Shown: one piece after another, positions 1 through 27,560 of the stretch
How positions within the stretch are numbered: the first letter of the stretch is position 1
How the letters are laid out: every line of letters starts with the position of its first letter
Source: Octopus sinensis
Taxonomy: Eukaryota
Length of the DNA stretch: 29,172 nt
Direction: 5' to 3'
Assembly (NCBI RefSeq): GCF_006345805.1
Contig: NW_021833160.1
Location: forward strand, 1-29,172
Position numbers and translations under genes: made by a program
Notes under the pieces: generated by a model
What the model was told of the DNA's origin: nothing
Database searches by the model: none
Seen by the model: only the letters and a program-made list of their open reading frames with translations

Positions 1-1699
1 AGTAGAAATCAGGGAAGTAGAAAGAATAAGTAAAATGGCAACACACGTCTGAGACTTAGCTAGCTGATTACTGAAGCTACTGGCTAAGAGAGAAGGGCTA
101 TAAACTGGGAAGAAACGTACTTGGAAGAGATATGAGAGGTAGAAGTAGGAGTGGCACTGTGAAGTAGGTGCACGATAAACCTAAATCAAACCAGGGAAGG
201 TTTGTATCAGATATAACAAAGTGCTGTCGTTTAATATTCTTGGATGTCAAGATTGTTCAAACTCTCGATGAGTACATGGTTTAGACTTGACGATAAGAAT
301 GATTAATTGGAATTTAATTCGACCAAACCATAATGTAATTAGCTTTTTCGTACCGAGAATGAAATCTCTTTCCTCATTAGCAGCTGGAGGGAAACAGTTG
401 GAACACTTCCCGCTATTTTCTCGCAAGGAGTTCACAGTTTGAAACTAATTAAACCGCTCCCTGTATCTGAAAAAAAGGAGTGAGTGTATCCCATTTATTT
501 AGTACATGTGATCAAGAAAGACCCACCCAGCATATTATCAAGTGTCTTCGGGGTTGAAATACTTACGATTTTGGCAGGAGAAGAAAAAAAAATGGTATAT
601 CGTTTGCTTCCAGTGTTTAGCAATTGATGTTCCAGAAACCGAACTACTAATTTCTTGCTTGAAGAATAGCTGTTTGGTGCCAGCTGTGTCCAGAATGCCA
701 AGAAATAACTTGATAACTCTTCATTTTATTGGTAATTAATTCACCACATCATATGAATGGAATCAGACTCAGTCAGGTATAAATATGGCTGACAAGAATT
801 AAATTTTCAATTTTGGTTTTATTTTAAAGAAAAGTGAAAAGTATTTTTTTAAGTGTCAAATAAAATGAGAATTTATCTCACGTGCAAACAAACAAACATA
901 TATAAATATATATATATACATATATATGTATAGACAGACAGACAGACAGGCAGACACACACACACACACACATATATATATATACATACATATACATATA
1001 TATGTATACATGCATATATTTATATATATATATTGTGTGTTTATGTATGTATGCATGTATGTATAAATTTACAGACATATGCATTTACACACACACACAC
1101 GTATCCGTACACGTATATACAAATGCATATGCATTCATACACACATACACACATATTTCCCAAAGTAAACACTTCAAATGGATACATACACATTTTATAG
1201 TTTGATAAATACATGCGAGATCACATCGCAATGCTTAAATGAAAATATGAATTTCTATTATAAGTGTGAAATACTCGCGTGTTTATGAATACAATGAGTT
1301 ATATAGATTACTGTTATTATACTCAGTTGTATACAGCGGTTTTCTGTTTTATCTCTTTAGTTAACTTTAACAATAACAATTGATAATCATCAACATTTTA
1401 TTCATTGCCTCTGTTGGCCTGTCCGATTGTTAGCTTAATAATTAGTTTACGGTTTTATCTGTAAGTTATTAACTAGGTTTTTATTTTGCTCTCTGGCAGC
1501 ATGGTGTAACCAATATGATGGAAACTATATAACTGAACTTTACTCTGTGGCCTACCTTTCTAACTTAGTTATAATATTTTATACCAGAATAATCTGATCA
1601 ACTTCATTGTCGTGAATTGGTACAAGATTTTATACTAATTCTTCAACATTTCGCTTACCATGCGAGTCACTGGTGGTGACTCCTCACCGTATATTCTTA

Positions 1700-2458
1700 T
1701 TTCTTTATTGACCACAATAAGCTAAACATAGAGGGGACAAGCAAGGACAGACAAAGGGATTAAGTCGATTACATCGACCTCAGTGTGTAACTGGTACTTA
1801 GTTAATTGACCCCGAAAGGATGAAAGGCAAAGTCGACCTCGGCGGAACTTGAACTCAAAACGTAACGGTAGACGAAATACCTATTTCTTTACTACCCACA
1901 AGGGGCTAAACACAGAGGAGACAAACAAGGGCAGACAGACGGATTAAGTCGATTATATCGACCCCAGTGCGTAACTGGTACTTAATTTATCGACCCCGAA
2001 AGGATGAAAGACAAAGTCGACCTCGGCGGAATTTGAACTCAAAACGTAACGGTAGACGAAATACCTATTTCTTTACTACCCACAAGGGGCTAAACAGAGA
2101 GGAGACAAACAAGTACAGACAAACGGATTAAGTCGATTATATCGACTCCAGTGCGTAACTGGTACTTAATTTATCGACCCCGAAAGGATGAAAGGCAAAG
2201 TCAACCTCGGCGGAATTTAAGCTCAGACGAAATACATATTTCTTTACTATCTACAAGGGGCTAAACACAGAGGGGACAAACAAGGACAGACATAGGTATT
2301 AAGTCGATTATATCGACTCCAGTGCGTAACTGGTACTTGATTTATCGACCCCGAAAGGATGAAAGGCAAAGTCGACCTCGGCGGAATTTGAACTCAGAAC
2401 GTAGCGGCAGACGAAATACCGCTGAGCATTTCGCCCGGCGTGTTAACGTTTCTGCCAG
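1700..2458 (-). mobile_element. Tandem array of 4 family A tRNA-derived SINE units (one with the head, three headless, about 184-bp period), flanked by one target-site duplication
   Basis: GACGAAATAC recurs at 1871, 2055, 2226 and 2410 (spacing 184, 171, 184). On the minus strand the head reads GAGCTGGCAGAAACGTTAACACGCCGGGCG (A-box-like) and the head-bearing unit has GTTCAAATTCC (B-box-like; variant in other units). A 17-bp direct repeat CTCACCGTATATTCTTA lies at 1683-1699 and 2459-2475. Confidence 0.9.
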
Positions 2459-2747
2459 CTCACCGTATATTCTTAATATACCATGACAGTCACCGGTAAC
2501 ACTCCACGCTATATACTTTATATACCAGGAGAATCACCAGTGACTCCCAATGGTGATTAAAAAAAAAAAAAAAATTTTATGGCGCCCCACATTACTATGG
2601 TTCAAACATTACTTGAATTTTCAGGAAATGTAAGAAACACATGTTTTGAAAATGAGAACCAGCTGAGCGTTAGCGCCTCTCTTTATCACTGTCTATCTGG
2701 CTGTCCCCCCCTCTCTCTTCAGTTGTTACATCCTTGTTGTTCTGCAG

Positions 2748-2887
2748 GGCCAAACGCTGGGAGATCCGAGAAAGTGTCTACGTCTGTTCGCAGCTATACA
2801 GGCACCTAAAGCAATTAGCGAAAACATGGTTCATGTTACCAAGCTATCCTCATTCTCGAGTGACGGTAGCTTTGAAGGAAAGAACAG
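2748..2887 (+). CDS. Possible 140-nt internal exon, product unknown
   Basis: Pyrimidine-rich tract ending TTCTGCAG (2747); weak donor CAG|GTTTCA (2888); non-repetitive and less AT-rich than the flanks; two of three frames are open (GQTLGDPRKCLRLFAAIQAPKAISENMVHVTKLSSFSSDGSFEGKN or AKRWEIRESVYVCSQLYRHLKQLAKTWFMLPSYPHSRVTVALKERT). No homolog recognised. Confidence 0.25.
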
Positions 2888-2919
2888 GTTTCACATTTGT
2901 CATTTGCAAAAGAAGTGTG

Positions 2920-3089
2920 CATACATACATACATGCATACATTGATATGCACACATACGCATATATATATATGCATACATACATACATACATATATACAT
3001 ATATACATACATACATACATACATATATACATATATACATACATACATACATTCATACATATATATATATATATATATATATATATATA
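2920..3089. repeat. (CATA)n/(TA)n microsatellite
   Basis: Directly visible tandem CATA and TA units. Confidence 0.95.
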
Positions 3090-25545: not shown

Positions 25546-26027
25546 TATCCAATCAGGACTCACGCCATTAGCCACAAAGAATAATCTCCAATTCGAGCCT
25601 ACTCTAAGCTACTAAGAATGCGTGTGGCAACTTGAAGATCCACCCACCACACGCGATAGACTGGCGGTTGCACGGGCGCGAACGCTACGTTTTTTATCCT
25701 CATTCCGTAAACGGTGGCTTTTTAACGGGTGGAGAGCTGAACCATCCTGGGTACAGAAGATTCGCAATCTAGACTAGGGTCTGAAAGTTTACCACACCAT
25801 AGTGGGCTACACCATGGTTCCTCTGCTTTGTGACAGAAGTAGGAAGAAAGAGTGAGAGAAAGTTGTGGTGAAAGAGTACAGCGGAGTTCACTACCTCACC
25901 CCGCCAGAGCTTCGTGGAGCTTAGGTGTTTTTGCTCAATAAACACTGACAATGCCCGGTCTGGGAATCGAAACCGTGTTCTTACGACCGCGAGTCCGCCG
26001 CCCTAACCAATGGGCCATTGCGCCTCC
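25490..26027 (-). mobile_element. tRNA-Arg-like SINE with an alternative 3' body and probable (GAA)n tail
   Basis: 25836-26027 is the reverse complement of about 4382-4570; the remainder is unrelated to the 3' half of that copy and ends in (GAA)n. Confidence 0.7.
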
Positions 26028-26602
26028 CGTTGTTGTTGTTGCTCTTATTGTTGTTGCTATGTAATTTCAGAACCCTTCCTTATCGAATAGTTTATCTTGT
26101 ATGCAAGTTGTCGGCCAAAAACAACGTGACGCTATCTACAAATACTGTTTTCTATTTATACCATGTCCGTGCTTAGCTAATGGTCATACTGTACACTCCA
26201 GCATATAATGAAAACCCACACAAGGTACAATGTGACACTCTACGGACATATTGCACTCGCCCTGACGTCCAGTCTTTATTTGTACGTCTGTAGATTATGG
26301 TGTAGACCACAACAGAGTCGAGAGAGGTGAATTCGGTCATAGAACGAAAGCCGCTGTTCCTTTGTTGATTGTTCTGGCCCTGGTATTTTGGAGTATTTTT
26401 TGTGATTTCTCTGTTGCGTTGTGTGTGTCAGATGAAAATAAAGGATTGAAGTAGGAGTCTAGGTGAAAGGATTGGATTTTTACAAAATGTTTTCTTGTTT
26501 TCTTGGAGTTTTCCTTTTGGGGGTTGATTTTTCAAAAGTGTCGGATAATGATGTGTGCTTGGTATTGCAGTGTATGTTATTTGAGGTTTTACTGTAACAT
26601 AA

Positions 26603-26805
26603 AGCGGTGAAATGATAGAACCATTAGCGTGCTAGATAAATTGCTTAGCGGCGTTTCTTCCAGCTCTCGAATTCCAACGACATCGACTTTACCTTTTATC
26701 TTTTCGGGTTCGATGAAATAAGTACCACTCAGGCACCGGGGTTAATATAATCGACTTACCCACCCTGTCCTCAAAAATGCTGACCTTGTGCCGAAACTGA
26801 AACTA
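26603..26805 (+). mobile_element. Old family A SINE, type-2 tail
   Basis: Degenerate head, core CGACTTTACCTTTTATCTTTTCGGGTTCGAT and tail CTGACCTTGTGCCGAAA. Confidence 0.75.
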
Positions 26806-26807
26806 AA

Positions 26808-27560
26808 GGTGGCGAGCTGGCAGGAACGTTAGCACGCCGGGCGATATGCTCTGCGGTATTTCGTCTGCCGCTACGTTCAAAGTTCAAATTCCGCCGAGGT
26901 CGACTTGGCCTTTCATCCTTTCGGGGTCGATTAAATAAGTACCAGTTACGCACTGGGATCGATATAATCGACTTAATCCGTTTGTCTGTCCTTGTTTGTC
27001 CTCTCTGGGCTTAGCCCCTTGTGGCTAGTAAAGAAATAGGTACTTCGTTTGTCTTTACGTTCTGAGTTCAAATCCCGCCGTGGTCGACTTTGCCTTTCAT
27101 CCTTTCGGGGTCGATTAAATAAGTACCAGTTGTGTACTGGGTCGATATAATCGACTTAATCCGTTTGTCTGTCCTTGTTTGTCCTCTCTGTGTTTAGCCC
27201 CTTGTGGGTAGTAAAGAAATAAGTATTTCGTTTGTCTTTACGTTCCGAGTTCAAATTCCGCCGTGGTCGACTTTGCCTTTCATCCTTTCGGGGTCGATTA
27301 AATAAGTACCAGTTGTGTACTGGGTCGATATAATCGACTTAATCCGTTTGTCTGTCCTTGTTTGTCCTCTCTTGGTTTAGCCCCTTGTGGCTAGTAAAGA
27401 AATAGGTATTTCGTTTGTCTTTACGTTCTGAGTTCAAATCCCGCCGTGGTCGACTTTGCTTTTCATCCTTTCGGAGTCGATGGAATAAGAATCAGTTTCG
27501 CACTGGCGTCGATGTAATCGATATACCTACGCCTCAATCCCACAAAAGAATTCTGATCTT
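26808..27560 (+). mobile_element. Tandem array of 4 family A SINE units (period 183-184 bp); the last unit has a different tail
   Basis: GGTATTTCG-type junction motif at 26855, 27039, 27222 and 27405. Confidence 0.92.

Follow-up and report, generated by a model that had tools for sequence, protein, structure and literature searches.

The window analysed here is a 29-kb stretch of Octopus sinensis DNA (contig NW_021833160.1, positions 1-29,172), AT-rich and microsatellite-laden eukaryotic sequence in which a profile search recognized 25 segments of a short interspersed nuclear element (SINE), together covering 13% of its length. The A-type tails of this SINE are followed by AGAA (CAAT variant) or by GGTAT or a one-mismatch form of it (TAGT variant). 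Each motif is far beyond chance even with only three independent events, the link between tail variant and motif is weak, and both motifs also occur inside the SINE head. We consider it probable (roughly 0.6) that new copies arise by target-primed insertion at AGAA and GGTAT sites, that they nest in the heads of older SINEs, and that tandem arrays are subsequently built by recombination. All frequencies given below come from this single window, which was possibly noticed precisely for being unusual.

Tail endings, target motifs and target-site duplications

The SINE profile that underlies the map and bit scores was built in nhmmer from five full-length copies. The consensus measures 229-230 nt, is non-coding with stops in all frames, and carries a box-A-like TGGCAGAAACG (TGGCAGAATGG in the B-type) at about positions 10-20, read against TRGCNNAGTGG, and a box-B-like GAGTTCAAATTCC at about 71-83, read against GGTTCGANNCC. 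The element is best described as a putative tRNA-like octopus SINE of the RNA polymerase III (Pol III) type; no tRNA was called in the window by ARAGORN or Rfam. A conserved core extends to about position 165, and the 3' part beyond it defines the subfamily. The A-type ends in ..TTAGCCCCTTGTGGG followed by either TAGT or CAAT and then AAAGAAATA, the B-type in ..GGATT(ATT)n, and the C-type, known from two short fragments only, both within (TATC)n, in ..GGCTAATAAAGAAACA. TAGT and CAAT copies are true sublineages, separated by three linked positions (CAAT markers 199A/218C/220A). The A-type tail is best read as derived from a long interspersed nuclear element (LINE), and a conserved tail hairpin was rejected since RNAalifold gave no pairs.

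Tails were collected by regular-expression listing, exact pattern search and direct reading on the element strand, and all twelve are listed in Table 1. By exact pattern search, TAAAGAAAYA matches 11 times in the window against 0.34 expected. A preliminary description of this DNA had reported that every CAAT tail is followed by AGAA (3/3), that every TAGT tail is followed by a GGTAT-like pentamer (7/7), and that both motifs are present in the SINE head. We find the first and the last of these to be correct, with AGAA at consensus positions 14-17 and GGTAT at 47-51; the second stands as a count (four exact, three with one mismatch), but two arrays account for six of these junctions, which are not independent. 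The rule is kept by all ten A-type tails. Because array units are related to each other by duplication or recombination, the independent events were set at a conservative minimum of three for AGAA and three for GGTAT (array 1, array 2 and the solo copy) rather than three and seven. AGAA occupies 0.8% of window positions and GGTAT 0.08%, and the chance of three independent matches is about 5e-7 and 6e-10, respectively.

The other tail classes have downstream motifs of their own: (TATC)n follows the C-type tail in both instances and (ATT)n follows the B-type tail. A perfect three-by-three table of tail class against downstream motif has a p value of about 0.004, and the match between downstream bases and the start of the target-site duplication (TSD) is non-random and specific to tail class (CAAT 3/3, TAGT at least 3/3, C-type 2/2). 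AGAA and GGTAT are best read as fixed in the head across the SINE superfamily, the former inside box A (position 14) and the latter between boxes A and B (position 47).

Analysis of the insertions into non-SINE DNA revealed that the motifs belong to the target. The claim that two non-SINE TSDs start with the motif was confirmed for both. The solo TAGT copy, 97.3% identical to the consensus over positions 47-229, is flanked by a 12-nt TSD, TCTGT[A/G]CATACC, which reads GGTATG[C/T]ACAGA on the element strand, and the 17-nt TSD of array 1 bears AGAA. GGTAT as part of the element was rejected, being present at both ends of the solo TSD; the presence of the motifs in TSDs of unique DNA therefore identifies AGAA and GGTAT as target sequence and not element sequence. 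Beyond the motif the TSDs are unrelated. Insertion makes use of two motifs, each 4-5 nt long, at two places in unique DNA and at two positions of the head, and the copies do not share one defined target as nearly all copies of a sequence-specific element of the R2, R1 or Dong kind would. At the outer 5' end of array 1 the TSD contains ACGGTGAG, which resembles the SINE 5' end, ACGGCGAG; this 5' junction has 8 nt of microhomology and is a further instance of joining guided by homology. A 37-bp AT-rich satellite (18633-20590, about 53 copies, 111-bp higher-order period) directly adjoins the head side of the solo SINE and yields a spurious 729-aa open reading frame (ORF) that starts within it.

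The element contains no run of four Ts. For the five tails examined, such a run is first reached 32-194 nt into the downstream flank or only beyond 400 nt. Pol III terminates at T runs, and any transcript of the SINE must therefore carry flank sequence at its 3' end. Some heads (18154-18166 and 28080-28092) carry GGTATTTTG or AGTATTTTG over positions 47-55; if a copy were nested at position 47 of one of these, it would meet a Pol III terminator immediately behind GGTAT and give an RNA ending ..AAAUAGGUAUUUU.

Nested insertions and mosaic arrays

Four A-type tails are joined directly to the interior of another SINE head, two at position 14 and two, at the downstream ends of the arrays, at position 47 (Table 1). 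The head of the CAAT copy at 23302 is of the B-type up to position 32, and its stretch 23314-23332 is identical to the start of the adjoining B-type SINE (23527-23545) at 19 of 19 positions; hence the junction of the new copy with the old head was made in register. A candidate TSD surrounds this composite of A- and B-type sequence (23274-23291 and 23704-23721; repeat D4, 83% over 18 nt). In the fragment at 18133-18194, the 19-mer AGAAACGTTAGCACGCCGG matches the head of the copy upstream (17915-17933) at 89%. Downstream copies score 0.46, 0.54 and 0.88 bits/nt, versus about 1.0-1.1 for A units, and on this measure they are older than the A units upstream of them. The reverse order, in which 5'-truncated newcomers landed behind old tails, was rejected as the downstream units are the older ones. 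Because the downstream units are older and of different kinds, the 23302 head is chimeric, one TSD surrounds the whole of array 1 and a candidate TSD the 23302 composite, a nested origin is supported for the founding junctions, both tail-to-14 and tail-to-47.

The element had also been described as preferring its own head. Nesting at head positions 14 and 47 stands, but the four targets comprise two B-type copies (U4 of array 2 and 23527-23710), one copy of the CAAT sublineage lying under TAGT units (U4 of array 1) and one unassigned fragment, so the best reading of these sequences is a targeting of superfamily heads rather than strict self-targeting. GGTAT occurs 48 times in the window, ten of them in SINEs of the same orientation, and for the extended motif GCGGTAT the fraction rises to 6/8 although SINEs make up so little of the window; GGCAGAA lies in same-orientation SINEs at 8/12 sites.

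Both arrays consist of head-to-tail partial SINE units. Array 1 is enclosed by one identical 17-nt TSD, and its U2-U4 all begin at consensus position 47, U2 with a 12-nt deletion at 57-68. Its inner tails are of the TAGT type, with 156A in U1-U3, and the tail of U4 is of the CAAT type, together with 199A/218C/220A. Array 2 comprises three A-type units and a B-type unit.

Neighbouring units share private variants in both arrays, as the table of informative sites reveals. In array 1 the sharing is chain-like (U1-U2 149A, U2-U3 193T, U3-U4 59A/70T). In array 2, U2 and U3 have 57T/60T/62T/89T in common with U4, 124T/127A/194T in common with U1, and private changes at 140-149, and U3 further matches U1 at 200G/217C; these two units are 96.2% identical, against 79.5-92.4% for all other pairs of A units. 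The 5' segment derived from the downstream neighbour is at least 24 nt long in array 1 and at least 43 nt in array 2, with switch points 24-77 nt from the junction, and the verified TSDs or duplications (12, 17 and 19 nt) are shorter than the copied segments. Unequal exchange yields units composed of the 5' part of the downstream unit and the 3' part of the upstream one. Since the units are mosaics of their neighbours and U2 and U3 of array 2 are near-duplicates, unequal crossing-over or gene conversion appears to fit the arrays better than iterated self-insertion.

This bears directly on the model put forward in the preliminary description, in which arrays grow as copies are retrotransposed again and again into the head site, guided by bases read through from the next unit, with positive feedback. 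Parts of that model hold well: the founding junctions at positions 47 and 14 need an insertion, read-through is unavoidable, each insertion turns one GGTAT site into two, and 63C and 156A are common to the two head units, as would be expected of separate recent insertions from one lineage. The building of the arrays by self-insertion agrees poorly with the units themselves, which share private variants with both neighbours, include a pair with eight variants in common, and display no 5'-to-3' gradient in age (identity to consensus 94.0, 87.0, 95.1 and 90.3% in array 1; 92.9, 92.4 and 90.8% in array 2). At least two of the four targets, moreover, come from another subfamily. As a complete account we rate it as unlikely.

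Other SINEs in the window and in a 36-kb chromosome stretch of Octopus bimaculoides (L005) deserve mention in their own right. A tandem trio of B-type SINEs lies at 27596-28185, where TAATCGACTTGTTAA precedes two of the heads and hints at a further nested insertion, in this case near position 166 in the body of a SINE. Further B-type SINEs (14567-15121; L005 15992-16375 and 17034-17417) have (ATT)n or (GTT)n at their ends and lie within or beside a microsatellite of matching sequence or the tail of an earlier copy; the result is full-length pairs arranged head to tail, and one inverted pair that flanks (TAA)n(TAT)n. The two C-type tail fragments (..AATAAAGAAACA; 5995-6035 and 13858-13903) look like insertions targeted to, or generating, a (TCTA/TATC)n microsatellite.

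Table 1. Positions of tails, SINE copies, arrays and TSDs in the window. A slash stands at the end of the tail.
Feature	Position	Strand	Description
CAAT tail	1698	-	..GGTCAATAAAGAAATA / AGAATATACGG; AGAA next
CAAT tail	18132	+	..GGGCAATAAAAGAAAGA / AGAAACGTTAGC; AGAA next
CAAT tail	23526	+	..GGGCAATAAAGAAATA / AGAATGGTTAG; AGAA next
TAGT tail	1882	-	exact GGTAT next
TAGT tail	2066	-	exact GGTAT next
TAGT tail	18353	-	exact GGTAT next
TAGT tail	27404	+	exact GGTAT next
TAGT tail	2237	-	one mismatch, TGTAT next
TAGT tail	27038	+	one mismatch, GGTAC next
TAGT tail	27221	+	one mismatch, AGTAT next
C-type tail-only fragment	5995-6035	+	..GGCTAATAAAGAAACA in (TCTA/TATC)n microsatellite; third tail class, third downstream motif
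C-type tail fragment, second	13858-13903	+	(TATC)30 follows
Solo full-length TAGT copy	18353-18584	-	in non-SINE DNA; nhmmer positions 2-229, 271 bits
Solo copy, 3'-side TSD	18341-18352	-	element strand GGTATGTACAGA; 11/12 match to 18585-18596 (GGTATGCACAGA)
Solo copy, 5'-side TSD	18585-18596	-	partner of 18341-18352
Array 1	1698-2465	-	four units; TRF period 184, 4 copies; nhmmer map
Array 1, U1	2238-2465		full-length head
Array 1, U2	2067-2237		
Array 1, U3	1883-2066		
Array 1, U4	1698-1882		
Array 1, 3'-side TSD	1683-1699	-	17 nt CTCACCGTATATTCTTA, element strand TAAGAATATACGGTGAG; overlaps last TA of tail
Array 1, 5'-side TSD	2459-2475	-	17-mer identical to 1683-1699
CAAT copy	17903-18132	+	tail adjoins position 14 of another SINE head
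Older SINE head fragment	18133-18194	+	positions 14-82; target of 17903-18132; nhmmer 34 bits over 63 nt; no subfamily assigned
CAAT copy, chimeric head	23302-23526	+	positions 14-32 B-type (AGAATGGTTAGTACGCCGG), remainder A-type
Older diverged B-type SINE	23527-23710	+	from position 14 on; nested target; nhmmer 63 bits over 137 nt
Array 2	26810-27404	+	
Array 2, U1	26810-27038	+	full-length TAGT
Array 2, U2	27039-27221	+	from position 47
Array 2, U3	27222-27404	+	from position 47
Array 2, U4	27405-27585	+	B-type from position 47, 3' part ..GAATGGATTATT; older target copy

Proposed mechanism and alternative explanations

In the mechanism that we propose, SINE RNA would be reverse transcribed by target priming at sites beginning AGAA(T/A) or GGTAT. 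As the longer motifs GGCAGAA and GCGGTAT stand mostly in SINE heads, many insertions would nest in older SINE heads. The complementary DNA (cDNA) would then be homologous to the target upstream of the nick and its 5' end could join in register, leaving an intact head followed by the new body and tail, and behind them the old copy truncated at position 14 or 47. Once a junction between tail and position 47 had formed, the 183-bp unit would be amplified, deleted and homogenized, mainly by unequal crossing-over or gene conversion.

Site choice itself may involve the read-through bases, which would anneal to the nicked strand and be re-acquired by each new copy from its own flank. By analogy with other elements, pairing of a few such bases with the nicked target is plausible. 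Since read-through is obligatory and the motif stands again behind every new copy, the preference would be self-perpetuating. The sequences themselves show the site preference, the nesting, a chimeric head joined in register, mosaic units in the arrays and the need for read-through, whereas pairing of RNA with the target as the cause, and the heritability of the preference, are inferred. A further proposal, which we put forward only tentatively and regard as possible rather than probable, is that the target preference is not encoded by the element at all: the 4-5 flank bases would be re-copied by read-through in each generation, so that lineages "inherit" their motif, and two lineages would have become locked onto motifs of the SINE head, turning heads into self-reinforcing landing pads that seed satellites.

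Several observations weigh against the proposed mechanism. Only six independent A-type events are available from the one window, and the table of tail variant against motif (3:0 and 0:3) makes for a weak link with a Fisher p of 0.10. AGAA has 475 sites, about 2% of them at head position 14, and cannot alone explain why two of three insertions are found there; a preference for the longer motifs, or pairing over more than 5 nt with a template flank derived from a SINE head, would direct the majority of insertions to heads. Another possible source of the chimeric array units is insertion with unusually long in-register overlaps. In an ORF from a different locus (P0130), which reads through two A-type units, the join lies about 9 nt further in and GGTATTTCG is missing; this represents an exception or else a deletion that happened later. 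The 12-nt deletion in U2 of array 1 is in the same place as this missing segment. The first tail of P0130, with AT-rich low-complexity sequence before it, is of a TAAT variant, and the two units show that arrays also exist at other loci.

Specificity of an endonuclease could likewise explain the choice of site without RNA pairing. According to this explanation the endonuclease of a partner LINE sets the site, roughly at GC/GGTAT and GGC/AGAA, and the link to the tail is an accident of small samples or reflects two partner LINEs. The bases before the nick agree with it, with GC at both GGTAT targets (head position 47 and the unique-DNA site) and GGC at the two head AGAA sites, that is at two of the three AGAA targets, and so does the weak tail link. 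At the AGAA site in unique DNA, however, the nick is preceded by TTA. Each of three tail classes goes perfectly with a motif of its own and the B-type with (ATT)n, and such a dependence on tail class has been reported for elements that rely on pairing (PMC6007223). We rate cleavage alone as an unlikely cause of the site choice.

Arrays could instead have been inserted ready-made, from multimeric master copies or by template switching of the reverse transcriptase from an RNA processed at its 5' end so as to begin at position 47 or 14 to the 3' end of another SINE RNA. One perfect TSD around all four units of array 1 would fit such an origin, as would the recurrence of the junction in both arrays, with a similar one in P0130, and the location of both breakpoints in loop-like parts of the tRNA-like head. 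It leaves unexplained why TSDs in unique DNA start with GGTAT or AGAA, and it sits poorly with last units that differ in family and tail between the arrays, with downstream units much older than those upstream, and with a head at 23302 that is chimeric with its own target. The chances of this explanation appear slim.

An origin at the DNA level only, in which replication slippage or unequal exchange made the tail-to-47 junction without nested insertion, is improbable to a still greater degree. Unequal recombination has been invoked to account for arrays of the form TSD1-(SINE)n-TSD1 both in bivalves (PMC11481361) and in squamates (PMC10702118), but here the same breakpoint is found in two arrays, the units flanking the founding junction are of different sublineages or families, and the tail end has no microhomology with the sequence before position 47. 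A retrozyme-like tandem repeat, propagated as circular RNA by self-cleaving ribozymes, might be suspected from a SINE-like repeat of about 180 bp in a mollusc, but no unit carries a recognizable ribozyme (no Rfam match at the gathering threshold in the window or at E<=1 in array 2), and the idea was rejected unless a new class of ribozyme is involved.

Distribution, neighbouring elements and known systems

The SINE, short, dispersed and multi-copy with TSDs of variable length (17 and 12 nt), is present in at least O. bimaculoides besides the window. The L005 stretch, reached by a search with the mariner ORF of the window, contains the same head and core 11 times, all of the B-type and none of the A-type. 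One predicted O. bimaculoides protein (P0123) contains, as an exonized segment, a peptide diagnostic of the A-type 3' region, and a query of SINE peptides padded with X identified three O. bimaculoides proteins with exonized SINEs in UniRef; a HMMER scan of 1.84 billion representatives returned only 7 SINE-bearing proteins. An exact-pattern scan for the A-type tail found no match in viral contigs and only chance matches in the metagenome and prokaryote-genome collections, of which the metagenome match L001 was scanned and is without the SINE. The protein search with the SINE-array ORF returned no candidate. A partner LINE sharing the tail was not found in the window or in L005; the clades recently active in O. 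vulgaris are Dong-R4, CR1, L1-Tx1 and RTE (PMC13282606).

The window also contains a mariner-type transposase remnant (PF01359) at 7993-8595 (-). Copies 93-95% identical to it lie on two ENA contigs (L004 and L006), both without the octopus SINE, and a mantis-shrimp protein is 89% identical, which suggests horizontal transfer among marine invertebrates. A (GTAT)128 microsatellite (8983-9496) was considered as a SINE tail and rejected, as it adjoins the end of the mariner remnant instead. Two ORFs at 10186-11212 (-) have by eye a hAT-transposase-like look (HCxxHxLNL-type motif); neither has a Pfam match.

If the preference holds genome-wide, it would explain the strong clustering of octopus SINEs, and tandem SINE repeats would be seeded by nested insertion, which supplies the first head-truncated duplicate, and expanded by recombination. 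A non-autonomous element could then carry a heritable insertion bias without encoding anything. Repeat annotation is affected too: chimeric heads and truncated units will be mistaken for full-length copies or for a 183-bp satellite in its own right. What is combined here in one small window are known principles, pairing-guided target-primed reverse transcription and the formation of SINE arrays by unequal exchange, and the system is a neat variation on known retroposon behaviour, not a new kind of system.

Among known octopus elements, the SINEs OK, OR1 and OR2 are likewise tRNA-derived (Ohshima & Okada 1994, as cited in a passage of PMC4758252); the likeness is one of description, not of compared sequence. 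The tail of the present SINE, with AATAAA/AGTAAA and short terminal motifs, is like L2-type tails (PMC4758252). The closest parallel for target choice is offered by RTE-related SINEs, in which the 3' terminal repeat predicts the first base of the TSD (Nishiyama & Ohshima 2018, PMC6007223): variants distinguished solely by their 3' end, such as the elephant SINEs ending in (GGTTTT)n and (CAA)n, use different TSD starts, and both RNA-target pairing and cleavage-site choice have been proposed as the cause. In both systems variants of the 3' end have different TSD starts. The octopus match extends over 4-5 nt rather than 1-2 nt, and, unlike in RTE-related SINEs, the tail positions that distinguish its variants are 9-12 nt short of the 3' end and its preferred motifs lie inside SINE heads. 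The RTE-type stretch of Ts about 10 nt upstream of the nick is absent at all four target sites.

Use of read-through target sequence is known from site-specific LINEs. In R2Ol, four read-through target nucleotides pair with the nicked DNA and thereby set the point where reverse transcription begins, and longer read-through raises efficiency (r4; PMC6795142); R1Bm is another such element, as cited within PMC6007223. Both are autonomous, with a sequence-specific endonuclease and one target in ribosomal DNA, whereas the octopus element is a Pol III SINE with loose motifs of 4-5 nt, for which pairing is proposed by analogy.

For the arrays, HCD-SINE of the bivalve Scapharca broughtonii provides the nearest counterpart: its TSD1-(SINE)n-TSD1 arrays, attributed to unequal recombination (PMC11481361), have a first unit with a complete tRNA head, the same head truncation in the units that follow, and one TSD around the whole. 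Inner HCD-SINE units are also truncated at the 3' end, whereas octopus inner tails are complete, and the octopus founding junction, unlike those of the bivalve arrays, coincides with the motif seen at TSD starts. Squamate SINE-derived satellites have similar repeat units, which begin where the head ends (box B) and take in the body and the LINE-derived region; one such unit is 179 nt long (PMC10702118). There, short arrays are regarded as "nuclei", with unequal recombination and same-locus insertion as the proposed origins (PMC10702118); the octopus arrays number three to four units.

Alu resembles the octopus SINE in that the SINE itself carries the preferred nick site of its LINE, with new copies landing in or next to old ones. 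Tandem Alu insertion with target-site triplication was reportedly described by El-Sawy and Deininger in 2005. Tandem Alu insertions are also attributed to Lee et al. 2015 where that work is cited in PMC11481361. Octopus B-type copies behave in an Alu-like manner at (ATT)n tails. The Alu site is the A-tail, giving full-length tandems, whereas the octopus sites lie in the head and give downstream units that are truncated there.

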